Below, piece by piece: positions 1-64,000 of a DNA stretch of 64,000 nt (the first letter of the stretch is position 1; each line of letters starts with the position of its first letter). The notes beneath the pieces are model-generated. The model was not told the DNA's origin, ran no database searches, and saw only the letters and a list, made by a program, of their open reading frames with translations. Location of the stretch: the NCBI RefSeq assembly GCF_022045235.1, contig NW_027266286.1:68510001-68574000 (forward strand). The letters are read 5' to 3'. The translations under genes and the position numbers were made by a program. The stretch comes from Haliotis cracherodii (Eukaryota).

Positions 1-69
1 TACAATCTTGAATTTGATTGTACTTGAAGAAAATATAACCAAAGATATATTTACAATATAAACCACAGC

Positions 70-75: not shown

Positions 76-187
76 TGTACTCGTTGAGAAATAGACAGAA
101 TGAATGGATGCAGCATGGTGAGTGCAATCGACAAATATGATATCAAATGTCCAGCACTTGATGTGAATATGATGATCCTTGAATCTT

Positions 188-782
188 TTAACCGTGGTGT
201 CCGCCTCCATGACCACCACCTCCATGACCACCTCCTCCGTGACCACCTCCTCCGTGGCCACCACCTCCGTGTCCTCCTCCTCCTCCTCCATGGCCACCAC
301 CTCCGTGTCCTCCTCCTCCTCCATGGCCACCACCTCCGTGTCCTCCTCCTCCTCCTCCATGGCCACCACCTCCGTGACCTCCACCACCGTGACCGCCGCC
401 TCCGTGACCACCTCCACCACCACCGTGGCCGCCTCCGCCTCCGCCTCCGTGGCCTCCGCCTCCATGGCCGCCACCACCACCACCATGGCCACCAAGGGCG
501 GAGCCAAGGAAGACTGTGAAGAATGTACAGAAACAACAATACATAAGTGGTCATATATGACAGGATACACACACACACACAAAATCCGTCCACCATTCCT
601 GATACAGTTTAGACCATGGTAGAAACTATCCTATTCATTACGTTGTCAGCAAATCGAAAAGCCACTTAAAACTCAGCAAGAGCTAATAAAGTTGATTATT
701 ACAAAGTTGAAGATTGCGAATTCTCATCAGATAAGGCACACTTACCCAAGACTACAACAACTGCAACGTTAAGAAGGCGCAT
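188..782 (-). CDS. Secreted Gly/His-rich protein, copy 1 (exons 746-782, 188-513; 120 aa)
   Basis: ATG at 782 gives MRLLNVAVVVVL+G, then the GTAAGT donor. The acceptor is ttcttcacag|TC at 514/513. Splicing rebuilds GTC (Val) in frame with FLGSALG-GHGGGGGGH...GGGHHG-TAA. TATA lies upstream and AATAAA downstream. The predicted mature part is 81 Gly + 19 His. Confidence 0.92.
514..745 (-). other. Phase-1 spliceosomal intron (232 nt) interrupting the signal peptide; present in every copy (230-236 nt)
   Basis: The minus strand reads G|GTAAGT ... attgttgtttctgtacattcttcacAG|. This is a consensus donor, a pyrimidine-rich tract and a CAG acceptor. Length varies only through the (AC)n tract. Confidence 0.92.
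567..580. repeat. Intronic (AC)n microsatellite
   Basis: (AC)7 in most copies, (AC)9 in copies 20 and 23, (AC)6 in copy 22, and interrupted in copy 16. Confidence 0.85.
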
Positions 783-850
783 CCTGTCAGTTACGTTGTT
801 TATCCACGAGAGAATAAACAATTTAAATGTCTCTTTTGGGATTCACACCG

Positions 851-859
851 CCTTATATA
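851..859 (-). promoter_or_regulatory. TATA box (TATATAAGG), repeated in each gene-bearing unit
   Basis: TATATAAGG on the minus strand, 31 nt upstream of an Inr-like CA(+1)TT at 829-826 and ~70 nt upstream of the ATG. Confidence 0.8.
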
Positions 860-900
860 CATGTGGTACAGGAAATCAGGATGTTGAATATAAATGCCCA

Positions 901-933
901 CATTGGAAGATTTTAGTAAATAAAATTCCAATG
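901..933. promoter_or_regulatory. Pair of inverted CCAAT boxes (about -75 and -100 from the inferred TSS)
   Basis: The + strand reads cattggaa-gattttagtaaataaaa-ttccaatg. CCAAT lies on the minus strand at 906-902 and on the plus strand at 928-932, at a canonical distance from TATA. Confidence 0.5.
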
Positions 934-1590
934 AGACTTTTTACAACTTTAGAGCGTGAAGAATGAATCTCTATTTTGTAATATCACATACGACACTGCC
1001 ACCTGCCTCTCTGTATTAGGCATATCTTCCTGCATAATTATTAAATGCAAACTGTGTATTTGTGACCTAACCTGGCACCCTGTGGCTATCTCACTGCCGG
1101 GAAGCATGATAGATTTAGTGGTTCATCCAATGCAATTACAGCTACAGACCGTTTTGTGAAAAACTTGAATGGAGATAGAATATTTTAAATGAAGGATAAA
1201 TGCTGACCTTTAGAATTTCGTTGGGTGCAAGTACTGAGTCTACTGAGCTACCATGACTTGGAGTCAAAGGACGTTTATCAACGTATGTCAAATACGTCTT
1301 TAAAAGCAGAGGTTGTGGGAAGCTAATTATTCATCTATTCATAATCAAACTTTATGTGAAGTTGGATTTTTCAAGTGTGTGATATATTTCAAAGTTTGAA
1401 TACCTGCCCGAATAATTTCAAAGTCTCATTATTTTCTACAATAAAACAGGGTGAAAGCTGATGATATACGCTCTTTGGTTTTCTGGCCTATAACACACGA
1501 ATGAACACAGGGAAATCATTCCATCCCTGCCCACATTACTTTTCAAAGGAACTCTTCCATCTAAGTTTATCTCGTGTGTGTATATGTGTG

Positions 1591-1610
1591 TGTTTGGGAG
1601 TGTTTGGGAG
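1591..1610. repeat. 10-bp direct repeat TGTTTGGGAG x2 in the spacer
   Basis: Two copies in most units, three near 61633-61662, and collapsed by an 11-bp deletion in the spacers after copies 19-21. Confidence 0.8.
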
Positions 1611-2983
1611 AGAAAGTTCACGTCACATTTTATGCTATTTCGTAACTGGCCCAAACACTAAACAATGATGAAATGCATGAACATTTTCTAAAGAGTGGTA
1701 AAATCTCAGCTTTCGAACACCACATGTGGACAGGATATATTTATCCATCACACGAATACCTGATGAAACCACTATCTCCGCAGGAACATGGATGTGGTGG
1801 TAGTTTATGACAGGCACTAGGGGCTTCAACCGTCAATCTATGACCCATGTATGAACCCCTTCCTGCCAAGCATTACCCACACCCACCCACCAAGCTACAG
1901 CACCAGAGATGAACATTCATCTGGCGTCAGAGCACAATTATTCGTCATTCTTTGCTATCTACAGTGGCATGCCAATTCATACTGATTAATATCGCCCTTG
2001 CTGACTAACCTGTTACTTATCATTTGAACAGCAAAATACCAGTCTGGGTCCACCAGCTCGACTTCCAAGTAAACGCTGTCAACAACGGTCACTGAAAGTA
2101 TCGAGCCGAAACACACCCATCGGCCTTCAACTGGGGGTCAAATCATGGGAAGTTCGAGTCAATATCATGCACACATTTTGGATCAAAACAAATTACCAAC
2201 ACAATACAATGTCCAATCTTGCATTTAAGCTATCACAAGTCACTCCAAACATATCTGACACAGACTCAACAACCCATTCAAACGGGGGACTATATTCTCC
2301 TATTTACCTTCCGGGTCATGGTAAAACTTAGGGGACGTAACTGTGGTCTCGGGCCTAGTCTATCTTAGAGCGAATCTGCTCCTTGACCATTCATATTGCG
2401 CTGGACTCTTGAAAAAAACAGAAAACAAACCAATTGGATTTGGTTTAGAGTGGGCTTTCTCTTGAGATCGTGCCGTTGTATTGGTGGATCGCTGCTCAAC
2501 TGTATAAGCTCTTAATTCTATCGGCATTGCATGAGTGCATTGAGGCACGTGCCACAGTTTTATTTGGACATGCACACGGCTGTAATTATAAGCCAGGTGG
2601 ACGTTTAGAGGCCATAATGATAGTACGATACTAAATGGGACTTCATGCATTTTCGGACAGAAACAGTCTACTTGCTTTGTTCAACATGTGTATAGGTTTA
2701 TTGGCAGGCCTTCGAGGTTCCTAACCTTGGTGGGAATGATTCCAAAGTGACAATCACTATGCAGGACACTGAAAAGTAAGTAGGGAAACTAGCTCATACA
2801 ATCTTGAATTTGATTGTACTTGAAGAAAATATAACCAAAGATATATTTACAATATAAACCACAGCTTTATTTGTACTCGTTGAGAAATAGACAGAATGAA
2901 TGGATGCAGCATGGTGAGTGCAATCGACAAATATGATATCAAATGTCCAGCACTTGATGTGAATATGATGATCCTTGAATCTT

Positions 2984-3581
2984 TTAACCGTGGTGTCCGC
3001 CTCCATGACCACCACCTCCATGACCACCTCCTCCGTGACCACCTCCTCCGTGGCCACCACCTCCGTGTCCTCCTCCTCCTCCTCCATGGCCACCACCTCC
3101 GTGTCCTCCTCCTCCTCCTCCATGGCCACCACCTCCGTGTCCTCCTCCTCCTCCTCCATGGCCACCACCTCCGTGACCTCCACCACCGTGACCGCCGCCT
3201 CCGTGACCACCTCCACCACCACCGTGGCCGCCTCCGCCTCCGCCTCCGTGGCCTCCGCCTCCATGGCCGCCACCACCACCACCATGGCCACCAAGGGCGG
3301 AGCCAAGGAAGACTGTGAAGAATGTACAGAAACAACAATACATAAGTGGTCATATATGACAGGATACACACACACACACAAAATCCGTCCACCATTCCTG
3401 ATACAGTTTAGACCATGGTAGAAACTATCCTATTCATTACGTTGTCAGCAAATCGAAAAGCCACTTAAAACTCAGCAAGAGCTAATAAAGTTGATTATTA
3501 CAAAGTTGAAGATTGCGAATTCTCATCAGATAAGGCACACTTACCCAAGACTACAACAACTGCAACGTTAAGAAGGCGCAT
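2984..3581 (-). CDS. Secreted Gly/His-rich protein, copy 2 (exons 3545-3581, 2984-3312; 121 aa)
   Basis: Same exon/intron structure; frame intact; mature region only G and H. Confidence 0.92.
3065..3172. repeat. Three tandem 36-nt coding modules (G4-H-G6-H) inside exon 2 (copy 2 shown)
   Basis: gtgtcctcctcctcctcctccatggccaccacctcc x3. Copies 15 and 23 have two modules, and the (GGA)n run length varies between copies. Confidence 0.9.
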
Positions 3582-5782
3582 CCTGTCAGTTACGTTGTTT
3601 ATCCACGAGAGAATAAACAATTTAAATGTCTCTTTTGGGATTCACACCGCCTTATATACATGTGGTACAGGAAATCAGGATGTTGAATATAAATGCCCAC
3701 ATTGGAAGATTTTAGTAAATAAAATTCCAATGAGACTTTTTACAACTTTAGAGCGTGAAGAATGAATCTCTATTTTGTAATATCACATACGACACTGCCA
3801 CCTGCCTCTCTGTATTAGGCATATCTTCCTGCATAATTATTAAATGCAAACTGTGTATTTGTGACCTAACCTGGCACCCTGTGGCTATCTCACTGCCGGG
3901 AAGCATGATAGATTTAGTGGTTCATCCAATGCAATTACAGCTACAGACCGTTTTGTGAAAAACTTGAATGGAGATAGAATATTTTAAATGAAGGATAAAT
4001 GCTGACCTTTAGAATTTCGTTGGGTGCAAGTACTGAGTCTACTGAGCTACCATGACTTGGAGTCAAAGGACGTTTATCAACGTATGTCAAATACGTCTTT
4101 AAAAGCAGAGGTTGTGGGAAGCTAATTATTCATCTATTCATAATCAAACTTTATGTGAAGTTGGATTTTTCAAGTGTGTGATATATTTCAAAGTTTGAAT
4201 ACCTGCCCGAATAATTTCAAAGTCTCATTATTTTCTACAATAAAACAGGGTGAAAGCTGATGATATACGCTCTTTGGTTTTCTGGCCTATAACACACGAA
4301 TGAACACAGGGAAATCATTCCATCCCTGCCCACATTACTTTTCAAAGGAACTCTTCCATCTAAGTTTATCTCGTGTGTGTATATGTGTGTGTTTGGGAGT
4401 GTTTGGGAGAGAAAGTTCACGTCACATTTTATGCTATTTCGTAACTGGCCCAAACACTAAACAATGATGAAATGCATGAACATTTTCTAAAGAGTGGTAA
4501 AATCTCAGCTTTCGAACACCACATGTGGACAGGATATACTTATCCATCACACGAATACCTGATGAAACCACTATCTCCGCAGGAACATGGATGTGGTGGT
4601 AGTTTATGACAGGCACTAGGGGCTTCAACCGTCAATCTATGACCCATGTATGACCCCCTTCCTGCCAAGCATTACCCACACCCACCCACCAAGCTACAGC
4701 ACCAGAGATGAACATTCATCTGGCGTCAGAGCACAATTATTCGTCATTCTTTGCTATCTACAGTGGCATGCCAATTCATACTGATTAATATCGCCCTTGC
4801 TGACTAACCTGTTACTTATCATTTGAACAGCAAAATACCAGTCTGGGTCCACCAGCTCGACTTCCAAGTAAACGCTGTCAACAACGGTCACTGAAAGTAT
4901 CGAGCCGAAACACACCCATCGGCCTTCAACTGGGGGTCAAATCATGGGAAGTTCGAGTCAATATCATGCACACATTTTGGATCAAAACAAATTACCAACA
5001 CAATACAATGTCCAATCTTGCATTTAAGCTATCACAAGTCACTCCAAACATATCTGACACAGACTCAACAAGCCATTCAAACGGGGGACTATATTCTCCT
5101 ATTTACCTTCCGGGTCATGGTAAAACTTAGGGGACGTAACTGTGGTCTCGGGCCTAGTCTATATTAGAGCGAATCTGCTCCTTGACCATTCATATTGCGC
5201 TGGACTCTTGAAAAAAACAGAAAACAAACCAATTGGATTTGGTTTAGAGTGGGCTTTCTCTTGAGATCGTGCCGTTGTATTGGTGGATCGCTGCTCAACT
5301 GTATAAGCTCTTAATTCTATCGGCATTGCATGAGTGCATTGAGGCACGTGCCACAGTTTTATTTGGACATGCACACGGCTGTAATTATAAGCCAGGTGGA
5401 CGTTTAGAGGCCATAATGATAGTACGATACTAAATGGGACTTCATGCATTTTCGGACAGAAACAGTCTACTTGCTTTGTTCAACATGTGTATAGGTTTAT
5501 TGGCAGGCCTTCGAGGTTCCTAACCTTGGTGGGAATGATTCCAAAGTGACAATCACTATGCAGGACACTGAAAAGTAAGTAGGGAAACTAGCTCATACAA
5601 TCTTGAATTTGATTGTACTTGAAGAAAATATAACCAAAGATATATTTACAATATAAACCACAGCTTTATTTGTACTCGTTGAGAAATAGACAGAATGAAT
5701 GGATGCAGCATGGTGAGTGCAATCGACAAATATGATATCAAATGTCCAGCACTTGATGTGAATATGATGATCCTTGAATCTT

Positions 5783-6380
5783 TTAACCGTGGTGTCCGCC
5801 TCCATGACCACCACCTCCATGACCACCTCCTCCGTGACCACCTCCTCCGTGGCCACCACCTCCGTGTCCTCCTCCTCCTCCTCCATGGCCACCACCTCCG
5901 TGTCCTCCTCCTCCTCCTCCATGGCCACCACCTCCGTGTCCTCCTCCTCCTCCTCCATGGCCACCACCTCCGTGACCTCCACCACCGTGATCGCCGCCTC
6001 CGTGACCACCACCACCACCACCGTGGCCGCCTCCGCCTCCGCCTCCGTGGCCTCCGCCTCCATGGCCGCCACCACCACCACCATGGCCACCAAGGGCGGA
6101 GCCAAGGAAGACTGTGAAGAATGTACAGAAACAACAATACATAAGTGGTCATATATGACAGGATACACACACACACACAAAATCCGTCCACCATTCCTGA
6201 TACAGTTTAGACCATGGTAGAAACTATCCTATTCATTACGTTGTCAGCAAATCGAAAAGCCACTTAAAACTCAGCAAGAGCTAATAAAGTTGATTATTAC
6301 AAAGTTGAAGATTGCGAATTCTCATCAGATAAGGCACACTTACCCAAGACTACAACAACTGCAACGTTAAGAAGGCGCAT
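5783..6380 (-). CDS. Secreted Gly/His-rich protein, copy 3 (exons 6344-6380, 5783-6111; 121 aa)
   Basis: Intact; one Gly->Asp (GGGDH). Confidence 0.92.
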
Positions 6381-8581
6381 CCTGTCAGTTACGTTGTTTA
6401 TCCACGAGAGAATAAACAATTTAAATGTCTCTTTTGGGATTCACACCGCCTTATATACATGTGGTACAGGAAATCAGGATGTTGAATGTAAATGCCCACA
6501 TTGGAAGATTTTAGTAAATAAAATTCCAATGAGACTTTTTACAACTTTAGAGCGTGAAGAATGAATCTCTATTTTGTAATATCACATACGACACTGCCAC
6601 CTGCCTCTCTGTATTAGGCATATCTTCCTGCATAATTATTAAATGCAAACTGTGTATTTGTGACCTAACCTGGCACCCTGTGGCTATCTCACTGCCGGGA
6701 AGCATGATAGATTTAGTGGTTCATCCAATGCAATTACAGCTACAGACCGTTTTGTGAAAAACGTGAATGGAGATAGAATATTTTAAATGAAGGATAAATG
6801 CTGACCTTTAGAATTTCGTTGGGTGCAAGTACTGAGTCTACTGAGCTACCATGACTTGGAGTCAAAGGACGTTTATCAACGTATGTCAAATACGTCTTTA
6901 AAAGCAGAGGTTGTGGGAAGCTAATTATTCATCTATTCATAATCAAACTTTATGTGAAGTTGGATTTTTCAAGTGTGTGATATATTTCAAAGTTTGAATA
7001 CCTGCCCGAATAATTTCAAAGTCTCATTATTTTCTACAATAAAACAGGGTGAAAGCTGATGATATACGCTCTTTGGTTTTCTGGCCTATAACACACGAAT
7101 GAACACAGGGAAATCATTCCATCCCTGCCCACATTACTTTTCAAAGGAACTCTTCCATCTAAGTTTATCTCGTGTGTGTATATGTGTGTGTTTGGGAGTG
7201 TTTGGGAGAGAAAGTTCACGTCACATTTTATGCTATTTCGTAACTGGCCCAAACACTAAACAATGATGAAATGCATGAACATTTTCTAAAGAGTGGTAAA
7301 ATCTCAGCTTTCGAACACCACATGTGGACAGGATATACTTATCCATCACACGAATACCTGATGAAACCACTATCTCCGCAGGAACATGGATGTGGTGGTA
7401 GTTTATGACAGGCACTAGGGGCTTCAACCGTCAATCTATGACCCATGTATGACCCCCTTCCTGCCAAGCATTACCCACACCCACCCACCAAGCTACAGCA
7501 CCAGAGATGAACATTCATCTGGCGTCAGAGCACAATTATTCGTCATTCTTTGCTATCTACAGTGGCATGCCAATTCATACTGATTAATATCGCCCTTGCT
7601 GACTAACCTGTTACTTATCATTTGAACAGCAAAATACCAGTCTGGGTCCACCAGCTCGACTTCCAAGTAAACGCTGTCAACAACGGTCACTGAAAGTATC
7701 GAGCCGAAACACACCCATCGGCCTTCAACTGGGGGTCAAATCATGGGAAGTTCGAGTCAATATCATGCACACATTTTGGATCAAAACAAATTACCAACAC
7801 AATACAATGTCCAATCTTGCATTTAAGCTATCACAAGTCACTCCAAACATATCTGACACAGACTCAACAAGCCATTCAAACGGGGGACTATATTCTCCTA
7901 TTTACCTTCCGGGTCATGGTAAAACTTAGGGGACGTAACTGTGGTCTCGGGCCTAGTCTATATTAGAGCGAATCTGCTCCTTGACCATTCATATTGCGCT
8001 GGACTCTTGAAAAAAACAGAAAACAAACCAATTGGATTTGGTTTAGAGTGGGCTTTCTCTTGAGATCGTGCCGTTGTATTGGTGGATCGCTGCTCAACTG
8101 TATAAGCTCTTAATTCTATCGGCATTGCATGAGTGCATTGAGGCACGTGCCACAGTTTTATTTGGACATGCACACGGCTGTAATTATAAGCCAGGTGGAC
8201 GTTTAGAGGCCATAATGATAGTACGATACTAAATGGGACTTCATGCATTTTCGGACAGAAACAGTCTACTTGCTTTGTTCAACATGTGTATAGGTTTATT
8301 GGCAGGCCTTCGAGGTTCCTAACCTTGGTGGGAATGATTCCAAAGTGACAATCACTATGCAGGACACTGAAAAGTAAGTAGGGAAACTAGCTCATACAAT
8401 CTTGAATTTGATTGTACTTGAAGAAAATATAACCAAAGATATATTTACAATATAAACCACAGCTTTATTTGTACTCGTTGAGAAATAGACAGAATGAATG
8501 GATGCAGCATGGTGAGTGCAATCGACAAATATGATATCAAATGTCCAGCACTTGATGTGAATATGATGATCCTTGAATCTT

Positions 8582-9182
8582 TTAACCGTGGTGTCCGCCT
8601 CCATGACCACCACCTCCATGACCACCTCCTCCGTGACCACCTCCTCCGTGGCCACCACCTCCGTGTCCTCCTCCTCCTCCTCCATGGCCACCACCTCCGT
8701 GTCCTCCTCCTCCTCCTCCATGGCCACCACCTCCGTGTCCTCCTCCTCCTCCTCCTCCATGGCCACCACCTCCGTGACCTCCACCACCGTGATCGCCGCC
8801 TCCGTGACCACCACCACCACCACCGTGGCCGCCTCCGCCTCCGCCTCCGTGGCCTCCGCCTCCATGGCCGCCACCACCACCACCATGGCCACCAAGGGCG
8901 GAGCCAAGGAAGACTGTGAAGAATGTACAGAAACAACAATACATAAGTGGTCATATATGACAGGATACACACACACACACAAAATCCGTCCACCATTCCT
9001 GATACAGTTTAGACCATGGTAGAAACTATCCTATTCATTACGTTGTCAGCAAATCGAAAAGCCACTTAAAACTCAGCAAGAGCTAATAAAGTTGATTATT
9101 ACAAAGTTGAAGATTGCGAATTCTCATCAGATAAGGCACACTTACCCAAGACTACAACAACTGCAACGTTAAGAAGGCGCAT
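8582..9182 (-). CDS. Secreted Gly/His-rich protein, copy 4 (exons 9146-9182, 8582-8913; 122 aa)
   Basis: Intact; shares Gly->Asp with copy 3; +1 Gly. Confidence 0.92.
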
Positions 9183-11383
9183 CCTGTCAGTTACGTTGTT
9201 TATCCACGAGAGAATAAACAATTTAAATGTCTCTTTTGGGATTCACACCGCCTTATATACATGTGGTACAGGAAATCAGGATGTTGAATGTAAATGCCCA
9301 CATTGGAAGATTTTAGTAAATAAAATTCCAATGAGACTTTTTACAACTTTAGAGCGTGAAGAATGAATCTCTATTTTGTAATATCACATACGACACTGCC
9401 ACCTGCCTCTCTGTATTAGGCATATCTTCCTGCATAATTATTAAATGCAAACTGTGTATTTGTGACCTAACCTGGCACCCTGTGGCTATCTCACTGCCGG
9501 GAAGCATGATAGATTTAGTGGTTCATCCAATGCAATTACAGCTACAGACCGTTTTGTGAAAAACGTGAATGGAGATAGAATATTTTAAATGAAGGATAAA
9601 TGCTGACCTTTAGAATTTCGTTGGGTGCAAGTACTGAGTCTACTGAGCTACCATGACTTGGAGTCAAAGGACGTTTATCAACGTATGTCAAATACGTCTT
9701 TAAAAGCAGAGGTTGTGGGAAGCTAATTATTCATCTATTCATAATCAAACTTTATGTGAAGTTGGATTTTTCAAGTGTGTGATATATTTCAAAGTTTGAA
9801 TACCTGCCCGAATAATTTCAAAGTCTCATTATTTTCTACAATAAAACAGGGTGAAAGCTGATGATATACGCTCTTTGGTTTTCTGGCCTATAACACACGA
9901 ATGAACACAGGGAAATCATTCCATCCCTGCCCACATTACTTTTCAAAGGAACTCTTCCATCTAAGTTTATCTCGTGTGTGTATATGTGTGTGTTTGGGAG
10001 TGTTTGGGAGAGAAAGTTCACGTCACATTTTATGCTATTTCGTAACTGGCCCAAACACTAAACAATGATGAAATGCATGAACATTTTCTAAAGAGTGGTA
10101 AAATCTCAGCTTTCGAACACCACATGTGGACAGGATATACTTATCCATCACACGAATACCTGATGAAACCACTATCTCCGCAGGAACATGGATGTGGTGG
10201 TAGTTTATGACAGGCACTAGGGGCTTCAACCGTCAATCTATGACCCATGTATGACCCCCTTCCTGCCAAGCATTACCCACACCCACCCACCAAGCTACAG
10301 CACCAGAGATGAACATTCATCTGGCGTCAGAGCACAATTATTCGTCATTCTTTGCTATCTACAGTGGCATGCCAATTCATACTGATTAATATCGCCCTTG
10401 CTGACTAACCTGTTACTTATCATTTGAACAGCAAAATACCAGTCTGGGTCCACCAGCTCGACTTCCAAGTAAACGCTGTCAACAACGGTCACTGAAAGTA
10501 TCGAGCCGAAACACACCCATCGGCCTTCAACTGGGGGTCAAATCATGGGAAGTTCGAGTCAATATCATGCACACATTTTGGATCAAAACAAATTACCAAC
10601 ACAATACAATGTCCAATCTTGCATTTAAGCTATCACAAGTCACTCCAAACATATCTGACACAGACTCAACAAGCCATTCAAACGGGGGACTATATTCTCC
10701 TATTTACCTTCCGGGTCATGGTAAAACTTAGGGGACGTAACTGTGGTCTCGGGCCTAGTCTATCTTAGAGCGAATCTGCTCCTTGACCATTCATATTGCG
10801 CTGGACTCTTGAAAAAAACAGAAAACAAACCAATTGGATTTGGTTTAGAGTGGGCTTTCTCTTGAGATCGTGCCGTTGTATTGGTGGATCGCTGCTCAAC
10901 TGTATAAGCTCTTAATTCTATCGGCATTGCATGAGTGCATTGAGGCACGTGCCACAGTTTTATTTGGACATGCACACGGCTGTAATTATAAGCCAGGTGG
11001 ACGTTTAGAGGCCATAATGATAGTACGATACTAAATGGGACTTCATGCATTTTCGGACAGAAACAGTCTACTTGCTTTGTTCAACATGTGTATAGGTTTA
11101 TTGGCAGGCCTTCGAGGTTCCTAACCTTGGTGGGAATGATTCCAAAGTGACAATCACTATGCAGGACACTGAAAAGTAAGTAGGGAAACTAGCTCATACA
11201 ATCTTGAATTTGATTGTACTTGAAGAAAATATAACCAAAGATATATTTACAATATAAACCACAGCTTTATTTGTACTCGTTGAGAAATAGACAGAATGAA
11301 TGGATGCAGCATGGTGAGTGCAATCGACAAATATGATATCAAATGTCCAGCACTTGATGTGAATATGATGATCCTTGAATCTT

Positions 11384-11981
11384 TTAACCGTGGTGTCCGC
11401 CTCCATGACCACCACCTCCATGACCACCTCCTCCGTGACCACCTCCTCCGTGGCCACCACCTCCGTGTCCTCCTCCTCCTCCTCCATGGCCACCACCTCC
11501 GTGTCCTCCTCCTCCTCCTCCATGGCCACCACCTCCGTGTCCTCCTCCTCCTCCTCCATGGCCACCACCTCCGTGACCTCCACCACCGTGACCGCCGCCT
11601 CCGTGACCACCACCACCACCACCGTGGCCGCCTCCGCCTCCGCCTCCGTGGCCTCCGCCTCCATGGCCGCCACCACCACCACCATGGCCACCAAGGGCGG
11701 AGCCAAGGAAGACTGTGAAGAATGTACAGAAACAACAATACATAAGTGGTCATATATGACAGGATACACACACACACACAAAATCCGTCCACCATTCCTG
11801 ATACAGTTTAGACCATGGTAGAAACTATCCTATTCATTACGTTGTCAGCAAATCGAAAAGCCACTTAAAACTAAGCAAGAGCTAATAAAGTTGATTATTA
11901 CAAAGTTTAAGATTGCGAATTCTCATCAGATAAGGCACACTTACCCAAGACTACAACAACTGCAACGTTAAGAAGGCGCAT
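11384..11981 (-). CDS. Secreted Gly/His-rich protein, copy 5 (exons 11945-11981, 11384-11712; 121 aa)
   Basis: Intact; same structure. Confidence 0.92.
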
Positions 11982-50527: not shown

Positions 50528-51131
50528 TTAACCGTGGTGTGCGCCTCCATGACCACCACCTCCATGACCACCTCCTCCGTGACCACCTCCTCCGTGGCCA
50601 CCACCTCCGTGTCCTCCTCCTCCTCCTCCATGGCCACCACCTCCGTGTCCTCCTCCTCCTCCTCCATGGCCACCACCTCCGTGTCCTCCTCCTACTCCTC
50701 CTCCTCCATGGCCACCACCTCCGTGACCTCCACCACCGTGACCGCCGCCTCCGTGACCACCACCACCACCACCGTGGCCGCCTCCGCCTCCGCCTCCGTG
50801 GCCTCCGCCTCCATGGCCGCCACCACCACCACCATGGCCACCAAGGACGGAGCCAAGGAAGACTGTGAAGAATGTACAGAAACAACAATACATAAGTGGT
50901 CATATATGACAGGATACACACACACACACAAAATCCGTCCACCATTCCTGATACAGTTTAGACCATGGTAGAAACTATCCTATTCATTACGTTGTCAGCA
51001 AATCGAAAAGCCACTTAAAACTCAGCAAGAGCTAATAAAGTTGATTATTACAAAGTTTAAGATTGCGAATTCTCATCAGATAAGGCACACTTACCCAAGA
51101 CTACAACAACTGCAACGTTAAGAAGGCGCAT
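50528..51131 (-). CDS. Secreted Gly/His-rich protein, copy 19 (exons 51095-51131, 50528-50862; 123 aa)
   Basis: Intact; A18V in the signal peptide, one Gly->Val, C-terminus GGAHHG. Confidence 0.9.
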
Positions 51132-53321: not shown

Positions 53322-53929
53322 TTAACCGTGGTGTGCGCCTCCATGACCACCACCTCCATGACCACCTCCTCCGTGACCACCTCCTCCGTGGCCACCACCT
53401 CCGTGTCCTCCTCCTCCTCCTCCATGGCCACCACCTCCGTGTCCTCCTCCTCCTCCTCCATGGCCACCACCTCCGTGTCCTCCTCCTCCTCCTCCTCCTT
53501 CATGGCCACCACCTCCGTGACCTCCACCACCGTGACCGCCGCCTCCGTGACCACCACCACCACCACCGTGGCCGCCTCCGCCTCCGCCTCCGTGGCCTCC
53601 GCCTCCATGGCCGCCACCACCACCACCATGGCCACCAAGGGCGGAGCCAAGGAAGACTGTGAAGAATGTACAGAAACAACAATACATAAGTGGTCATATA
53701 TGACAGGATACACACACACACACACACAAAATCCGTCCACCATTCCTGATACAGTTTAGACCATGGTAGAAACTATCCTATTCATTACGTTGTCAGCAAA
53801 TCGAAAAGCCACTTAAAACTCAGCAAGAGCTAATAAAGTTGATTATTACAAAGTTTAAGATTGCGAATTCTCATCAGATAAGGCACACTTACCCAAGACT
53901 ACAACAACTGCAACGTTAAGAAGGCGCAT
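53322..53929 (-). CDS. Secreted Gly/His-rich protein, copy 20 (exons 53893-53929, 53322-53656; 123 aa)
   Basis: Intact; Gly->Glu, C-terminus GGAHHG; intron 4 nt longer. Confidence 0.9.
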
Positions 53930-56119
53930 CCTGTCAGTTACGTTGTTTATCCACGAGAGAATAAACAATTTGAATGTCGCCTTTGGGATTCACACCGCCT
54001 TATATACATGTGGTACAGGAAATCAGGATGTTGAATGTAAATGCCCACATTGGAAGATTTTAGTAAATAAAATTCCAATGAGACTTTTTACAACTTTAGA
54101 GCGTGAAGAAGGAATCTCTATTTTGTAATATCACATACGACACTGCCACCTGCCTCTCTGTATCAGGCATATCTTTCTGCATAATTATTAAATGCAAACT
54201 GTGTATTTGTGACCTAACCTGGCACCCTGTGGCTATCTCACTGCCGGGAAGCATGATAGATTTAGTGGTTCATCCAATGCAATTACAGCTACAGACCGTT
54301 TTGTGAAAAACTTAAATGGAGATAGAATATTTGAAATGAAGGATAAATGCTGACCTTTAGAATTTCGTTGGGTGCAAGTACTGAGTCTACTAAGCTACCA
54401 TGACTTGGAGTCAAAAAACGTTTATCAACGTATGTCAAATACGTCTTTAAAAGCAGAGGTTGTGGGAAGCTAATTATTCATCTATTCATAATCAAACTTT
54501 ATGTGAAGTTGGATTTTTCAAGTGTGTGATATATTTCAAAGTTTGAATACCTGCCCTAATAATTTCAAAGTCTCATTACTTTCTACAATAAAACAGGGTG
54601 AAAGCTGATGATATACGCTCTTTGGTTTTCTGGCCTATAACACATGAATGAGCACAGGGAAATCATGCCATCCCTGCCCACATTACTTTTCAAAGGAACT
54701 CTTCCATCTAAGTTTATCTCGTGTGTGTATATGTGTGTGTTTTGGAGAGAAAGTTCACGTCACATTTTATGCTATTTCGTAACTGGCCCAAACACTAAAC
54801 AATGATGAAATGCATGAACATTTTCTAAAGAGTGGTCAAATCTCAGCTTTCGAACACCACATGTGGACAGGATATACTTATCCATCACACGAATACCTGA
54901 TGAAACCACTATCTCCGCAGGAACATGGATGTGGTGGTAGTTTGTGACAGGCACTAGGGGCTTCAACCGTCAATCTATGACCCATGTATGACCCCCTTCC
55001 TGCCAAGCATTACCCACACCCACCCACCAAACAACAGCACCAGAGATGAACATTCATCTGGCGTCAGAGCACAATTATTCGTCATTCTTTGCTATCTACA
55101 GTGGCATGCCAGTTCATACTGATTAATATCGCCCTTGCCGACTAACCTGTTACTTATCATTTGAACAGCAAAATACCAGTCTGGGTCCACCAGCTCGACT
55201 TCTAAGTAAACGCTGTCAACAACGGTCACTGAAAGTATCGAGCCGAAACACACCCATCGGCCTTCAACTGGGGGTCAAATCATGGGAAGTTCGAGTCAAT
55301 ATCATGCACACATTTTGGATCAAAACAAATTACCAACACAATACAATGTCCAATCTTGCATTTAAGCTATCACAAGTCACTCCAAACATATCTGACACAG
55401 ACTCAACAACCCATTCAAACGGGGGACTATATTCTCCTATTTACCTTCCGGGTCATGGTAAAACGTAGGGGACGTAACTGTGGTCTCGGGCCTAGTCTAT
55501 CTTAGAGCGAATCTGCTCCTTGACCATTCATATTGCGCTGGACTCTTGAAAAAACAGAAAACAAACCAATTGGATTTGGTTTAGAGTGGGCTTTCTCTTG
55601 AGATCGTGCCGTTGTATTGGTGGATCGCTGCTCAACTGTATAAGCTCTTAATTCTATCGGCATTGCATGAGTGCATTGAGGCACGTGCCACAGTTTTATT
55701 TGGACATGCACACGGCTGTAATTATAAGCCAGGTGGACGTTTAGAGGCCATAATGATAGTACGATACTAAATGGGACTTCATGCATTTTCGGACAGAAAC
55801 AGTCTACTTGCTTTGTTCAACATGTGTATAGGTTTATTGGCAGGCCTTCGAGGTTCCTAACCTTGGTGGGAATGATTCCAAAGTGACAATCACTATGCAG
55901 GACACTGAAAAGTAAGTAGGGAAACTAGCTCATACAATCTTGAATTTGATTGTACTTGAAGAAAATATAACCAAAGATATATTTACAATATAAACCACAG
56001 CTTTATTTGTACTCGTTGAGAAATAGACAGAATGAATGGATGCAGCATGGTGAGTGCAATCGACAAATATGATACCAAATGTCCAGCACTTGATGTGAAT
56101 ATGATGATCCTTGAATCTT

Positions 56120-56723
56120 TTAACCGTGGTGTGCGCCTCCATGACCACCACCTCCATGACCACCTCCTCCGTGACCACCTCCTCCGTGGCCACCACCTCC
56201 GTGTCCTCCTCCTCCTCCTCCATGGCCACCACCTCCGTGTCCTCCTCCTCCTCCTCCATGGCCACCACCTCCGTGTCCTCCTCCTCCTCCTCCTCCTTCA
56301 TGGCCACCACCTCCGTGACCTCCACCACCGTGACCGCCGCCTCCGTGACCACCACCACCACCACCGTGGCCGCCTCCGCCTCCGCCTCCGTGGCCTCCGC
56401 CTCCATGGCCGCCACCACCACCACCATGGCCACCAAGGGCGGAGCCAAGGAAGACTGTGAAGAATGTACAGAAACAACAATACATAAGTGGTCATATATG
56501 ACAGGATACACACACACACACAAAATCCGTCCACCATTCCTGATACAGTTTAGACCATGGTAGAAACTATCCTATTCATTACGTTGTCAGCAAATCGAAA
56601 AGCCACTTAAAACTCAGCAAGAGCTAATAAAGTTGATTATTACAAAGTTTAAGATTGCGAATTCTCATCAGATAAGGCACACTTACCCAAGACTACAACA
56701 ACTGCAACGTTAAGAAGGCGCAT
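56120..56723 (-). CDS. Secreted Gly/His-rich protein, copy 21 (exons 56687-56723, 56120-56454; 123 aa)
   Basis: Intact; same protein as copy 20. Confidence 0.9.
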
Positions 56724-58269
56724 CCTGTCAGTTACGTTGTTTATCCACGAGAGAATAAACAATTTGAATGTCGCCTTTGGGATTCACACCGCCTTATATA
56801 CATGTGGTACAGGAAATCAGGATGTTGAATGTAAATGCCCACATTGGAAGATTTTAGTAAATAAAATTCCAATGAGACTTTTTACAACTTTAGAGCGTGA
56901 AGAAGGAATCTCTATTTTGTAATATCACATACGACACTGCCACCTGCCTCTCTGTATCAGGCATATCTTTCTGCATAATTATTAAATGCAAACTGTGTAT
57001 TTGTGACCTAACCTGGCACCCTGTGGCTATCTCACTGCCGGGAAGCATGATAGATTTAGTGGTTCATCCAATGCAATTACAGCTACAGACCGTTTTGTGA
57101 AAAACTTAAATGGAGATAGAATATTTGAAATGAAGGATAAATGCTGACCTTTAGAATTTCGTTGGGTGCAAGTACTGAGTCTACTAAGCTACCATGACTT
57201 GGAGTCAAAAAACGTTTATCAACGTATGTCAAATACGTCTTTAAAAGCAGAGGTTGTGGGAAGCTAATTATTCATCTATTCATAATCAAACTTTATGTGA
57301 AGTTGGATTTTTCAAGTGTGTGATATATTTCAAAGTTTGAATACCTGCCCTAATAATTTCAAAGTCTCATTACTTTCTACAATAAAACAGGGTGAAAGCT
57401 GATGATATACGCTCTTTGGTTTTCTGGCCTATAACACATGAATGAGCACAGGGAAATCATGCCATCCCTGCCCACATTACTTTTCAAAGGAACTCTTCCA
57501 TCTAAGTTTATCTCGTGTGTGTATATGTGTGTGTTTTGGAGAGAAAGTTCACGTCACATTTTATGCTATTTCGTAACTGGCCCAAACACTAAACAATGAT
57601 GAAATGCATGAACATTTTCTAAAGAGTGGTCAAATCTCAGCTTTCGAACACCACATGTGGACAGGATATACTTATCCATCACACGAATACCTGATGAAAC
57701 CACTATCTCCGCAGGAACATGGATGTGGTGGTAGTTTGTGACAGGCACTAGGGGCTTCAACCGTCAATCTATGACCCATGTATGACCCCCTTCCTGCCAA
57801 GCATTACCCACACCCACCCACCAAACAACAGCACCAGAGATGAACATTCATCTGGCGTCAGAGCACAATTATTCGTCATTCTTTGCTATCTACAGTGGCA
57901 TGCCAGTTCATACTGATTAATATCGCCCTTGCCGACTAACCTGTTACTTATCATTTGAACAGCAAAATACCAGTCTGGGTCCACCAGCTCGACTTCTAAG
58001 TAAACGCTGTCAACAACGGTCACTGAAAGTATCGAGCCGAAACACACCCATCGGCCTTCAACTGGGGGTCAAATCATGGGAAGTTCGAGTCAATATCATG
58101 CACACATTTTGGATCAAAACAAATTACCAACACAATACAATGTCCACTCTTACATTTAAGCTATCACAAGTCTCTCCAAACATATCTGGCAGAGACTCAA
58201 CAACCCATTCAAACGGGGGACTATATTCTCCTATTTACCTTCCGGGTCATGGTAAAACTTAGGGGACGT

Positions 58270-58300
58270 AACTGTGGTCTCGGGCCTGTGTATTTGTGAC
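58270..58300. other. Rearrangement junction: ~1.5-kb deletion removing one whole gene copy
   Basis: ...ggtctcgggc[ct]gtgtatttgtgacc... joins unit position ~2356 (normally gggcct|agtc) to position ~1054 of the next unit (normally aaact|gtgtattt). Gene spacing here is 4097 bp. Confidence 0.93.
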
Positions 58301-60216
58301 CTAACCTTGCACCCTGTGGCTATCTCACTGCCGGGAAGCATGATAGATTTAGTGGTTCATCCAATGCAATTACAGCTACAGACCGTTTTGTGAAAATTTG
58401 AATGGAGATAGAATATTTGAAATGAAGGATAAATGCTGACCTTTAGAATTTCGTTGGGTGCAAGTACTGAGTCTACTAAGCTACCATGACTTGGAGTCAA
58501 AAGACGTTTATCAACGTATGTCAAATACGTCTTTAAAAGCAGAGGTTGTGGGAAGCTAATTATTCATCTATTCATAATCAAACTTTATGTGAAGTTGGAA
58601 TTTTCAAGTGTGTGATATATTTCAAAGTTTGAATACCTGCCCTAATAATTTCAAAGTCTGATTACTTTCTACAATAAAACAGAGTGAAAGCTGATGATAT
58701 ACGCTCTTTGGTTTTCTGGCCTATAACACATGAATGAACACAGGGAAATCATTCCATCCCTGCCCATATTACTTTTAAAAGGAACTCTTCCATCTAAGTT
58801 TATCTCGTGTGTGTATATGTGTGTGTTTGGGAGTGTTTGGGAGAGAAAGTTCACGTCACATTTTATGCTATTTCGTAACTGGCCCAAACACTAAACAATG
58901 ATAAAATGCATGAACATTTTCTAAAGAGTGGTCAAATCTCAGCTTTCGAACACCACATGTTGACAGGATATACTTATCCATCACACGAATACCTGATGAA
59001 ACCACTATCTCCGCAGGAACATGGATGTGGTGGTAGTTTATGACAGGCACTAGGGGCTTCAACCGTCAATCTATGACCCATGTATGACCCCCTTCCTGCC
59101 AAGCATTACCCACACCCACCCACCAAACCACAGCACCAGAGATGAACATTCATCTGGCGTCAGAGCACAATTATTCGTCATTCTTTGCTATCTACAGTGG
59201 CATGCCAATTCATACTGATTAATATCGCCTTTGCTGACTAACCTGTTACTTATCATTTGAACAGCAAAATACCAGTCTGGGTCCACCAGCTCGACTTCCA
59301 AGTAAACGCTGTCAACAACGGTCACTGAAAGTATCGAGCCGAAACACACCCATCGGCCTTCAACTGGGGGTCAAATCATGGGAAGTTCGAGTCAATATCA
59401 TGCACACATTTTGGATCAAAACAAATTACCAACACAATACAATGTGCAATCTTGCATTTAAGCTATCACAAGTCACTCCAAACATATCTGGAACAGACTC
59501 AACAACCCATTCAAACGGGGGACTATATTCTCCTATTTACCTTCCGGGTCATGGTAAAACTTAGGGGACGTAACTGTGGTCTCGGGCCTAGTCTATCTTA
59601 GAGCGAATCTGCTCCTTGACCATTCATATTGCGCTGGACTCTTGAAAAAACAGAAAACAAACCAATTGGATTTGGTTTAGAGTGGGCTTTCTCTTGAGAA
59701 CGTGCCGTTGTATTGGTGGAGCGCTGCTCAACTGTATAAGCTCTTAATTCTATCGGCATTGCATGAGTGAATTGAGGCACGTGCCACAGTTTTATTTGGA
59801 CATGCACACGGCTGTAATTATAAGCCAGGTGGACGTTTAGAGGCCATAATGATAGTACGATACTAAATGGGACTTCATGCATTTTCGGACAGAAACAGTC
59901 TACTTGCTTTGTTCAACATGTGTATAGGTTTATTGGCAGGCCTTCGAGGTTCCTAACCTTTGTGGGCAATGATTCCAAAGTGACAATCACTATGCAGGAC
60001 ACTGAAAAGTAAGTAGGGAAACTAGCTCATACAATCTTGAATTTGATTGTACTTGAAGAAAATATAACCAAAGATATTTTTACAATATAAACCACAGCTT
60101 TATTTGTACTCGTTGAGAAATAGACAGAATGGATGGATGCAGCATGGTGAGTGCAATCGACAAATATGATATCAAATGTCCAGCACTTGATGTGAATATG
60201 ATGATCCTTGAATCTT

Positions 60217-60824
60217 TTAACCGTGGTGTCCGCCTCCATGACCACCACCTCCATGACCGCCTCCTCCGTGACCACCTCCTCCGTGGCCACCACCTCCGTG
60301 TCCTCCTCCTCCTCCTCCGTGGCCACCACCTCCGTGTCCTCCTCCTCCTCCTCCTCCATGGCCACCACCTCCGTGTCCTCCTCCTCCTCCTCCTCCATGG
60401 CCACCACCTCCGTGACCTCCACCACCGTGACCGCCGCCTCCGTGACCACCACCACCACCACCGTGGCCGCCACCTCCATGGCCTCCGCCTCCGTGGCCTC
60501 CGCCTCCATGGCCGCCACCACCACCACCATGGCCACCAAGGGCGGAGCCAAGGAAGACTGTGAAGAATGTACAGAAACATTAATACATAAGTGGTCATAT
60601 ATGACAGGATACACACACACACAAAATCCGTCCACCATTCCTGATACAGTTTAGACCATGGTAGAAACTATCCTATTCATTACGTTGTCAGCAAATCGAA
60701 AAGCCACTTAAAACTCAGCAAGAGCTAATAAAGTTGATTATTACAAAGTTTAAGATTGCGAATTCTCATCAGATAAGGCACACTTACCCAAGACTACAAC
60801 AACTGCAACGTTAAGAAGGCGCAT
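60217..60824 (-). CDS. Secreted Gly/His-rich protein, copy 22 (exons 60788-60824, 60217-60557; 125 aa); absent from the ORF track
   Basis: The spliced frame is intact (mature 85 Gly + 20 His). The unspliced MYCC... ORF is broken by an intronic TAA, so the ORF finder missed it. Confidence 0.9.
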
Positions 60825-63034
60825 CCTGTCAGTTACGTTGTTTATCCACGAGAGAATAAACAATTTGAATGTCGCTTTTGGGATTCACACCGCCTTATAT
60901 ACATGTGGTACAGGAAATCAGGATGTTGAATGTAAATGCCCACATTGGAAGATTTTAGTAAATAAAATTCCAATGAGACTTTTTACAACTTTAGAGCGTG
61001 AAGAATGAATCTCTATTTTGTAATATCACATGTGACAGTGTCACCTGCCTCTCTGTATTAGGCATATCTTCCTGCATAATTATTAAATGCAAACTGTGTA
61101 TTTGTGACCTAACCTGGCACCCTGTGGCTATCTCACTGCCGGGAAGCATGATAGATTTAGTGGTTCATCCAATGCAATTACAGCTACAGACCGTTTTGTG
61201 AAAAACTTGAATGGAGATAGAATATTTGAAATGAAGGTTAAATGCTGACCTTTAGAATGTCATTGGGTGCAAGTACTGAGTCTACTGAGCTACCATGACT
61301 TGGAGTCAAAGGACGTTTATCAACGTATGTCAAATACGTCTTTAAAAGCAGAGGTTGTGGGAAGCTAATTATTCATCTATTCATAATCAAACTTTATGTG
61401 AAGTTGGATTTTTCAAGTGTGTGATATATTTCAAAGTTTGAATACCTGCCCTAATAATTTCAAAGTCTCAATACTTTCTGCAATAAAACAGGGTGAAAGC
61501 TGATGATATACGCTCTTTGGTTTTCTGGCCTATAACACATGAATGAACACAGGGAAATCATGCCATCCCTGCCCATATTACTTTTAAAAGGAACTCTTCC
61601 ATCTAAGTTTATCTCGTGTGTGTATATGTGTGTGTTTGGGAGTGTTTGGGAGTGTTTGGGAGAGAAAGTTCACGTCACATTTTATGCTATTTCGTAACTA
61701 GCCCAAACACTAAACAATGGTGAAATGCATGAACATTTTCTAAAGAGTGGTCAAATCTCAGCTTTCGAACACCACATGTGGACAGGATATACTTATCCAT
61801 CACACGAATACCTGATGAAACCACTATCTCCGCAGGAACATGGATGTGGTGGTAGTTTATGACAGGCACTAGGGGCTTCAACCGTCAATCTATGACCCAT
61901 GTATGACCCCCTTCCTGCCAAGCATTACCCACACCCACCCACCAAACAACAGCACCAGAGATGAACATTCATCTGGCGTCAGAGCACAATTATTCGTCAT
62001 TCTTTGCTATCTACAGTGGCATGCCTATTCATACTGATTAATATCGCCCTTGCTGACTAACCTGTTACTTATCATTTGAACAGCAAAATACCAGTCTGGG
62101 TCCACCAGCTCGACTTCCAAGTAAACGCTGTCAACAACGGTCACTGAAAGTATCGAGCCGAAACACACCCATCGGCCTTCAACTGGGGGTCAAATCATGG
62201 GAAGTTCGAGTCAATATCATGCACACATTTTGGATCAAAACAAATTACCAACACAATACAATGTCCAATCTTGCATTTAAGCTATCACAAATCACTCCAA
62301 ACATATCTGGAACAGACTCAACAACCCATTCAAACGGGGGACTATATTCTCCTATTTACCTTCCGGGTCATGGTAAAACTTAGGGGACGTAACTGTGGTC
62401 TCGGGCCTAGTCTATCTTAGAGCGAATCTGCTCCTTGACCATTCATATTGCGCTGGACTCTTGATGAAACAGAAAACAAACCAATTGGATTTGGTTTAGA
62501 GTGGGCTTTCTCTTGAGAACGTGCCGTTGTATTGGTGGATCGCTGCTCAACTGTATAAGCTCTTAATTCTATCGGCATTGCATGAGTGCATTGAGGCACG
62601 TGCCACAGTTTTATTTGGACATGCACACGGCTGTAATTATAAGCCAGGTGGACGTTTAGAGGCCATAATGATAGTACGATACTAAATGGGACTTCATGCA
62701 TTTTCGGACAGAAAAAGTCTACTTGATTGTTCAACATGTGTATAGGTTTATTGGCAGGCCTTCGAGGTTCCTTACCTTTGTGGGCAATGATTCCAAAGTG
62801 ACAATCACTATGCAGGACACTGAAAAGTAAGTAGGGAAACTAGCTCTTACAATCTTGAATTTGATTGTACTTGAAGAAAATATAACCAAAGATATTTTTA
62901 CAATATAAACCACAGCTTTATTTGTACTCGTTGAGAAATAGACAGAATGGATGGATGCAGCATGGTGAGTGCAATCGACAAGTATGATATCAAATGTCCA
63001 GCACTTGATGTGAATATGATGATCCTTGAATCTT

Positions 63035-63606
63035 TTAACCGTGGTGTCCGCCTCCATGACCACCACCTCCATGACCACCTCCTCCGTGACCACCTCCTCC
63101 GTGGCCACCACCTCCGTGTCCTCCTCCTCCTCCTCCATGGCCACCACCTCCGTGTCCTCCTCCTCCATGGCCACCACCTCCGTGACCTCCACCACCGTGA
63201 CTGCCGCCTCCGTGACCTCCACCACCACCACCACCACCGTGGCCGCCACCTCCATGGTCTCCGCCTCCGTGGCCTCCGCCTCCATGGCCGCCACCACCAC
63301 CACCATGGCCACCAAGGGCGGAGCCAAGGAAGACTGTGAAGAATGTACAGAAACAACAATACATAAGTGGTCATATATGACAGGATACACACACACACAC
63401 ACACAAAATCCGTCCACCATTCCTGATACAGTTTAGACCATGGTAGAAACTATCCTATTCATTACGTTGTCAGCAAATCGAAAAGCCACTTAAAACTCAG
63501 CAAGAGCTAATAAAGTTGATTATTACAAAGTTTAAGATTGCGAATTCTCATCAGATAAGGCACACTTACCCAAGACTACAACAACTGCAACGTTAAGAAG
63601 GCGCAT
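63035..63606 (-). CDS. Secreted Gly/His-rich protein, copy 23, divergent (exons 63570-63606, 63035-63333; 111 aa)
   Basis: Intact; Gly->Asp, Gly->Ser, two modules, altered Gly run lengths. Confidence 0.9.
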
Positions 63607-64000
63607 CCTGTCAGTTACGTTGTTTATCCACGAGAGAATAAACAATTTGAATGTCGCTTTTGGGATTCACACCGCCTTATATACATGTGGTACAGGAAAT
63701 CAGGATGTTGAATGTAAATACCCACATTGGACGATTTTAGTAAATAAAATTCCAATGAGACTTTTTACAACTTTAGAGCGTGAAGAAGGAATCTCTATTT
63801 TGTAATATCACATGTGACAGTGTCACCTGCCTCTCTGTATTAGGCATATCTTCCTGCATAATTATTAAATGCAAACTGTGTATTTGTGACCTAACCTGGC
63901 ACCCTGTGGCTATCTCACTGCCGGGAAGCATGATAGATTTAGTGGTTCATCCAATGCAATTACAGCTACAGACCGTTTTGTGAAAAACTTGAATGGAGAT

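Follow-up and report, generated by a model that had tools for sequence, protein, structure and literature searches.

The shepherins I and II from roots of the plant Capsella bursa-pastoris, 28 and 38 amino acids (aa) long, with GGH triplets and a Tyr, are cut from one secreted precursor that consists almost wholly of Gly and His. The sequence of shepherin I and its binding of Zn(II) and Cu(II) have been described; with Zn it forms fibrils and is thereby antifungal (PMC10698721). Here we analyse 64,000 nucleotides (nt) of the genome of the black abalone Haliotis cracherodii (contig NW_027266286.1, positions 68,510,001 to 68,574,000; hereafter the window), which are filled by a small gene of two exons, present on the minus strand in 23 near-identical, intact copies and encoding a predicted secreted Gly/His peptide. 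In contrast to the shepherins, the abalone chain of about 100 aa is uncut, has Gly runs of 4-8, and belongs to a family whose four tandem arrays, here called A to D and located on two chromosomes, comprise at least 119 genes. Protein searches, which are blind to low-complexity sequence, gave no match relating this family to the shepherins, and because a plant and a mollusc without detectable homology are being compared, the Gly/His likeness is likely a convergence. Secreted, low-complexity Gly/His-rich peptides and tandem multigene families are both established kinds; the abalone family with its sister arrays is previously undescribed, and no named relative of it was found.

Two worm jaw proteins, the Glycera multi-tasking protein (MTP; 49% Gly, 40% His) and Nereis Nvjp-1 (36% Gly, 27% His), are likewise secreted, signal-peptide-bearing and dominated by Gly and His, with His residues that bind Cu or Zn and an assembly triggered by pH or metal (PMC9999432). 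Unlike the abalone product they reach 30-40 kDa, contain Asp, Glu, Lys, Ala and Tyr and are expressed in jaw pulp, MTP has at most two Gly in succession, and PMC9999432 describes no tandem gene array for either. With its 7.3 kDa, Gly and His only and Gly runs of 3-9, the abalone peptide falls outside this group. Gly-rich peptides of 5-10 kDa are a recognised class of invertebrate antimicrobials; in those of arthropods, Gly makes up over 50-70% of the chain, His or basic residues are scattered through it, and several are C-terminally amidated. Holotricin-3, tenecin-3, acanthoscurrin, the ctenidins and armadillidin, arthropod peptides cited as members of this class (PMC11206429 and PMC5031766), share with the abalone product a signal peptide followed by a Gly-rich chain, but contain Tyr, Leu, Phe, Gln or Arg and are encoded by single genes or small clusters; no search that we ran revealed homology between them and the abalone family. 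Gly-rich peptides bearing His and Lys are also present in a small-peptide antibacterial fraction of mucus from the land snail Cornu aspersum, a gastropod like the abalone, and one of them contains GGGGHGGGGK (PMC11206429). In the literature that we found, this string is printed only for the Gly-rich peptides of land-snail mucus, and it also occurs in array D products. The snail peptides differ in their size of 1-3 kDa and in containing Leu, Asn, Pro and Glu, and no genes are known for them.

Two further systems combine Gly, His and metal. Metallohistins are secreted Gly/His-rich metal-binding nodule proteins of Alnus, and in the prion octarepeat HGGGW the His-Gly-Gly-Gly segment is a Cu(II) site. 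The former are plant proteins and the latter belongs to a vertebrate membrane protein, and the octarepeat Trp is absent from the abalone chain. In its genomic organisation the abalone family resembles histone, 5S/ribosomal DNA (rDNA) and fish antifreeze arrays, with genes and spacers arranged head to tail, near-identity within and divergence between arrays, and products of unequal exchange, as in a tandem multigene family under concerted evolution. What distinguishes it is the two-letter secreted peptide and the grading of four arrays in His and Lys. The tandem amplification of histone/rDNA style suggested by a first-pass annotation, which had been made from the letters of the window alone, is thus supported, with concerted evolution as an addition.

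A unit of 2.8 kb, each with a GC-rich core of 36-nt period, was found repeated over the entire window by Tandem Repeats Finder and direct reading. The window holds 22 full head-to-tail units, each a gene plus a spacer, 2.75-2.82 kb long except for one of 4.1 kb. The first-pass annotation had placed at least 23 genes here; all of them lie at the positions it gave, and 23 proved to be a lower bound, since array A in full (about C23:68,440,000-68,575,419) holds 48 gene copies, of which 47 are intact. The gene model that it gave for each unit is likewise supported; the sister arrays keep the leader exon, the splice sites, TATA, CCAAT and AATAAA. The gene plan is the same in all 23 copies (Table 1): an ATG, a 37-nt exon 1 ending in GTCTTGG, the donor GTAAGT, a GT-AG intron of 230-236 nt, the acceptor CACAG, and an exon 2 starting with TCTTCC. 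In the gene model, splicing joins ...GTCTTGG to TCTTCCTT.... Exon 2 finishes the hydrophobic leader and continues with 84-105 codons to a TAA directly after ...HHG. The intron sizes are accounted for by length differences of a (GT)6-9 microsatellite. An in-frame intronic ATG (MYCCFC...) opens an unspliced open reading frame (ORF); it is also present in array B, where its retention is probably due to chance.

The products of the 23 copies comprise 104-125 aa, with a 20-aa hydrophobic leader, MRLLNVAVVVVLVFLGSALG, that is identical in 22 copies and carries A18V in the remaining one, and 84-105 residues behind it. This chain is composed purely of Gly and His in 16 copies, in agreement with what had been described for most of them, and contains one or two of D, S, E, A or V in the other seven. 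Over 4,519 mature codons the composition is 80.9% Gly and 18.8% His (99.7% Gly or His), and the count of 81 G and 19 H given for copy 1 is exact. The runs of 4-8 Gly between His that had also been reported are mostly 4, 6 or 7 long, and their full range is wider (3-9). The commonest mature chain of array A has 101 residues and 7,301.9 Da, with 81% Gly and 19% His, and a calculated charge of +17 at pH 5, +4 at pH 6.5 and about 0 at pH 8.1.

By inspection, the leader consists of MR, a hydrophobic core of 13 residues and A-L-G before the cleavage site, with a grand average of hydropathy of 2.1. The basic n-region, the hydrophobic core and the small residues at -3 and -1 that mark a signal peptide are present in the same layout in all four arrays, and the product is predicted to be secreted, with cleavage at ...SALG|GH.... 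AlphaFold modelled the mature chain without secondary structure (predicted local distance difference test 53, predicted template modelling score 0.10), and the chain is predicted to be disordered. A Gly stands right before the stop (...HHG-stop) in every intact copy of arrays A and B and in every sampled copy of C and D, and this terminal Gly is a possible amidation donor.

To find relatives, 1,182,234,246 bases in 80 contigs were searched. A 43-nt string of exon 1 plus donor had 65 matches in the genome, distributed over array A (48), array B (16) and one inverted fragment, and since the reversed control had none, chance occurrence of the string is excluded. The 16 array B copies encode products of 124-147 aa with the leader of array A except for A18V, more closely spaced His, 2-3 Lys and the end GHGGGHHG. 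Arrays C and D were found by degenerate patterns for His-Gly4-His-Gly4-His and Lys-Gly4-Lys-Gly4-Lys; their copy counts rest on pattern matches and their sequences on 3-4 units sampled at each array end. The sampled products are Gly/Lys/His chains of 132-143 aa in array C and a 108-aa product with 13 Lys and 6 His in array D, in which the last copy is set apart by a 4.5-kb spacer. In all sampled units of C and D, a 37-nt exon 1 is followed by GTAAGT, the intron is in phase 1 and about 212-220 nt long, the leader ends in GSAYG, and the chain starts with GH... and closes with ...HHG-stop. Alignment from -110 to +45 around the ATG showed the four arrays to be homologous, with the conserved blocks TGATTTCCT, the TATA box, GTTTATTCT, the ATG and CTTGGGTAAGT. 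In all of them the chain begins with Gly-His after the predicted cleavage and ends with His-His-Gly, and Lys progressively replaces His at the same spacing over B, C and D, with array A as the all-His member.

Units of array A are 98.0-100% identical to each other, with neighbouring units most alike in a local identity gradient, whereas A and B, homologous across the whole unit, share 71-87%. Because of this difference, the comparison indicates that the arrays were homogenised separately by concerted evolution. Between A and B the gene features stand above the background identity: exon 1 is identical at 36 of 37 positions (97%), the single change being synonymous, the leader end at 22 of 23 (96%) and the last 45 nt of the coding region throughout, and the TATA box, CCAAT, both splice sites and AATAAA are kept. 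Arrays C and D are alignable with A and B only in the promoter, exon 1 and the coding region.

That all 23 copies keep their frame had been put forward by the first-pass annotation, and 63 of the 64 copies in A and B are indeed intact. Intact frames and in-frame indels are nevertheless weak coding evidence alone, because six frames are all open across the repeat and 3-nt periodic DNA slips in threes, and it is the codon-position tests that carry the argument. In the chain codons, positions 1 and 2 are almost invariant, while position 3 is a free mix of A, T and C, GGG occurring once in 3,657 Gly codons. Within arrays, 23 of 39 variable coding sites fall on position 3 (P = 9e-4), and almost every non-synonymous variant is a singleton. 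Between A and B, position 3 accounts for 40 of 61 mismatches (P = 3e-7); the others are nearly all paired GG<->CA exchanges, by which a His is shifted, apart from a single codon changed from Gly to Lys and a single leader codon changed from Ala to Val. Given the third-position excess, and a composition kept despite about 15-30% divergence of the adjacent non-coding DNA, we conclude from the sequences that the peptide is under purifying selection. Altogether, these comparisons argue that the arrays constitute a real protein-coding gene family amplified for dosage, rather than a satellite.

Parts of the stretch are present in twenty public sequencing runs. Two runs of organism F, from two studies, cover the whole unit at uniform high depth, including the joint from unit end to unit start, with about 2% differences; 15 of 33 checked differences also occur among the window's own units. 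The joint is also present in a run of organism C, which behaves as DNA because its depth is uniform and low. These independent DNA runs confirm the tandem arrangement. In run X1 (organism A, guessed to be RNA), a 331-nt contig of depth 498 spans the exon 2 end together with the 3' untranslated region (3'UTR), stopping at position 2862, 8 nt past AATAAA, while X1 contigs over the intron and spacer have a depth of 7-15. The excess of depth over exon 2 and the 3'UTR, those of a relative, is about 70-fold. Of the words, 22-35% are present in fourteen small runs that are guessed to be RNA. The family is likely expressed, on the basis of one probable RNA run of a relative.

Searches for named relatives were made with exon 2 or the unspliced ORF as queries, exon 1 alone (12 aa) being too short. 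The exon 2 product retrieved no protein at E <= 0.001 and the N-terminal 40 residues of the unspliced ORF none at E <= 10; a HMMER scan of 1.84 billion representative proteins gave 0 matches, the ESM Atlas no usable match, and three unspliced ORFs looked up exactly were absent from the protein collection. Because HMMER discounts biased composition, these blanks stand for neither novelty nor absence. HGGGGH-type or GGGGK-repeat strings were not found in the abalone literature that we searched, nor was anything similar in the papers on abalone shell, mantle and silk-like proteins that we checked; a paper on the chiton radula had no bearing on the family. The sequence had not been recognised as any named gene by the first-pass annotation, and protein searches and literature agree with this.

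From these features a mode of action can be proposed. Each unit brings its own TATA/CCAAT promoter, leader exon, phase-1 intron, exon 2 and AATAAA, and amplification together with homogenisation would supply the dose. Signal cleavage would leave a disordered poly-Gly chain of about 7.3 kDa with about 19 His, a free N-terminal Gly-His and a C-terminal His-His-Gly. The plan common to the arrays is a flexible poly-Gly backbone that bears, at intervals of 4-8 residues, a nucleophilic side chain, cationic or protonatable, and has fixed ends. Because the His/Lys series shares spacing, backbone and ends, the family may be read as mass-produced extracellular polycations, the all-His form of which would be switchable by pH and metal. 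Cu(II) is bound well by an N-terminal Gly-His and by His-Gly-Gly-Gly units, and Zn(II) by several imidazoles acting together; a terminal Gly is convertible to an amide. Each His-Gly-Gly-Gly unit of the abalone chain could bind Cu(II) or Zn(II), and in epithelial secretions the peptide might bind metals, anionic surfaces or polymers and condense on them, as Zn does with shepherin I. The first-pass annotation had suggested a metal-chelating, sclerotising or defence peptide. Since the sister arrays put Lys at the His positions of array A with the same spacing, the comparison points to a revision of this suggestion, beyond metal binding alone, toward cationic or nucleophilic side chains in general that recur at regular spacing.

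By analogy with the shepherins, the snail mucus peptides and the Gly-rich antimicrobial class, we tentatively favour an extracellular host-defence or mucus peptide of epithelial secretions, a role that we hold to be quite possible but short of probable; secretion, amidation, metal and pH behaviour, tissue and role are all features that we infer. Several observations weigh against it. Hydrophobic and aromatic residues are absent from the peptide, whereas antimicrobial peptides that act on membranes do not usually lack them, and 119 near-identical copies far exceed typical antimicrobial-peptide clusters and are more typical of bulk structural products. The conserved promoter has no kappa-B-like site in a motif scan, which also returned no AP-1, heat-shock element or STAT sites; as a whole, the scan was uninformative. 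The snail peptides are de novo mass-spectrometric readings, in which Gly-Gly and Asn are isobaric, and come from a different, distant gastropod lineage. Where 81% of a chain is Gly, a Gly at its C-terminus is weak evidence for amidation. Concerning expression, the RNA nature of X1 is a guess, and the contig abundant in it derives from a B-type relative, not array A, because the unaligned letters of that contig encode Lys; the sole X1 contig over exon 1 retains the intron, at depth 15. The check proposed by the first-pass annotation, to look for the splice junction and high expression, yielded exon-biased depth in this run, and no joint skipping the 232-nt intron was seen.

Nearly as likely as the defence or mucus peptide, although on its own rather unlikely, is a bulk structural or sclerotising matrix protein of radula, jaw, periostracum, shell matrix or pedal adhesive. 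By analogy with worm jaws, squid beak and mussel byssus, His and Lys would be cross-linked through Zn/Cu coordination or quinone addition, and the pH jump from acidic granule to seawater would trigger condensation. Extreme gene dosage and concerted evolution suit bulk products, the lack of hydrophobic residues runs contrary to a membrane-lytic role, and the calculated charge drops from +17 to 0 between pH 5 and 8.1. His and Lys act as nucleophiles in quinone tanning, and the interchange across the arrays is between these two. The composition is closest to that of Glycera MTP and Nereis Nvjp-1, which are hardened by Cu or Zn and assemble upon a pH trigger (PMC9999432). The peptide of 7-9 kDa is, however, small beside jaw proteins of 30-40 kDa, it has no Tyr/3,4-dihydroxyphenylalanine, Asp or Ala blocks, and its Gly runs are long, unlike those of MTP. 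Moreover, no abalone shell proteome or mantle paper with such a sequence was found, a search in which a chain free of Lys and Arg would escape as it gives no tryptic peptides. Somewhat more doubtful is the idea that the four arrays together provide a graded set of two- and three-letter polycations forming a tunable pH- and metal-responsive extracellular material or coacervate, such as an adhesive, a coating or a defence mucus gel. If true, biological material proteins would gain a new class, one whose composition is simpler than that of any other secreted polymer known to be encoded by genes.

We consider it improbable that the peptide is chiefly a metal buffer or carrier, a secreted counterpart of metallothionein that would use imidazoles to store, detoxify or deliver Cu, Zn or Ni, for example copper for haemocyanin, its genes amplified like metallothionein genes under metal stress. 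The chain does offer about 19 His in His-Gly-Gly-Gly units and an N-terminal Gly-His, which resemble the prion octarepeat copper site and the copper peptide GHK, respectively, and its termini are conserved in all four arrays. A metal-response element (MRE) core (TGCRCNC) is also conserved at about -445 in A and B, but a single MRE core is expected by chance. The sister arrays swap most His for Lys (13 K and 6 H in array D), a poor ligand at physiological pH, and there are no Cys, Asp or Glu residues. By far the least likely explanation is a non-functional 2.8-kb satellite with a GC-rich, 3-nt periodic core open in every frame, in which the 'gene' would be a relic or untranslated. The six open frames fit it, slippage alone would produce indels in multiples of three, no spliced read was seen, and protein searches were blank, although the latter is expected from the way HMMER treats biased composition. 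Such a satellite is hard to reconcile with the third-position excess within and between arrays, with pure Gly/His or Gly/His/Lys chains kept next to diverged non-coding DNA, and with a leader, splice sites, TATA, CCAAT, AATAAA and stop position conserved over four arrays. A single nonsense copy in 64 and the exon-biased depth in X1 argue in the same direction.

If expressed as predicted, the peptide, with its two residue types, would rank with the simplest secreted polypeptides known to be encoded by genes, and its own genes would form one of the largest arrays of near-identical protein-coding copies outside histones. The His and Lys versions side by side would constitute a natural experiment in sequence-minimal, pH- and metal-responsive polymers, and the four paralogous arrays provide a clear case of concerted evolution. 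The family also exposes a blind spot, as composition filters hide such peptides from homology search and the all-His form is hidden from trypsin-based proteomics because it has no Lys or Arg. Its host, the black abalone, is critically endangered and has been devastated by bacterial disease, so a mass-produced defence or mucus peptide would be of practical interest.

Table 1. Positions of the gene copies, array features and sister arrays. Gene copies run from stop to ATG; positions refer to the window unless preceded by C16.
Feature	Position	Strand	Period	Remarks
Gene copy 1	188..782	-		120 aa
Gene copy 2	2984..3581	-		121 aa, commonest product; reference copy
Gene copy 3	5783..6380	-
Gene copy 4	8582..9182	-
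Gene copy 5	11384..11981	-
Gene copy 6	14183..14780	-
Gene copy 7	16982..17579	-
Gene copy 8	19781..20378	-
Gene copy 9	22580..23177	-
Gene copy 10	25379..25976	-
Gene copy 11	28178..28775	-
Gene copy 12	30977..31577	-
Gene copy 13	33779..34379	-
Gene copy 14	36581..37181	-
Gene copy 15	39382..39928	-		short, 104 aa
Gene copy 16	42130..42733	-
Gene copy 17	44933..45536	-
Gene copy 18	47739..48327	-
Gene copy 19	50528..51131	-		leader A18V
Gene copy 20	53322..53929	-
Gene copy 21	56120..56723	-
Gene copy 22	60217..60824	-		125 aa
Gene copy 23	63035..63606	-		111 aa, last gene of array A
Copy 2 exon 1	3545..3581	-		37 nt; encodes MRLLNVAVVVVL and first base of Val codon; GTAAGT next
Copy 2 intron	3313..3544	-		232 nt, phase 1, holds (GT)n microsatellite
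Copy 2 exon 2	2984..3312	-		leader end FLGSALG, Gly/His chain, HHG, stop
Copy 2 TATA box TATATAA	3652..3658	-		-77 from ATG
Copy 2 CCAAT	3701-3705	-		-124 from ATG
Copy 2 AATAAA signal	2870..2875	-
Array A, right-hand 64 kb	1..64000	-		last unit extends ~1.4 kb beyond window end
Extra ~1.3 kb in unit 21	58286..59590	.		second copy of spacer positions 878-2179
Array B	C16:4,973,414-5,023,387		~3.1 kb	16 copies, all intact
Array C	C16:3,425,076 to ~3,490,000		2.45 kb	27 copies
Array D	C16:5,231,559-5,293,549		2.29 kb	at least 28 copies

A transposon insertion was ruled out as the cause of the 4.1-kb unit, in which the spacer is internally duplicated; the extra 1.3 kb of unit 21 is a product of unequal exchange within the spacer. 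An apparent 14-kb periodicity in the composition profile was found to be aliasing of 2.0-kb bins against the 2.8-kb unit. Several contigs from DNA runs match the spacer at about 3855-4001 and 4997-5148 and then continue into unrelated sequence, and parts of the spacer are therefore probably interspersed repeats present elsewhere in the genome. A small RNA in the spacer as a real amplified element was rejected after Rfam and tRNA scans, which detected no tRNA and a single chance-level Rfam match, located in the coding repeat. This sub-threshold match (3251-3287, minus strand; 22.8 bits, E = 0.39) is to the prion pseudoknot, which is an mRNA motif of the PrP octarepeat, itself Gly/His-containing; the match is most likely a composition effect.

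The sole broken copy among the 64 genes of arrays A and B lies in array A outside the window (ATG at C23:68,485,825) and has a GGA-to-TGA nonsense change at codon 57, after which the chain is otherwise intact. The first recognisable gene past array A is represented by plus-strand ORFs that lie 8-9 kb beyond the end of the window and match ankyrin repeats strongly (Ank_2, E = 4e-43); no other gene was recognised among the flanking ORFs. An isolated inverted fragment of 377 bp (C23:68,711,856-68,712,232, plus strand; 97% identity) lies 138 kb downstream of array A. It contains the promoter and exon 1 and breaks off halfway through the intron, with no Gly/His exon following. The fragment may be a relic; alternatively, another gene may have captured this promoter and leader.

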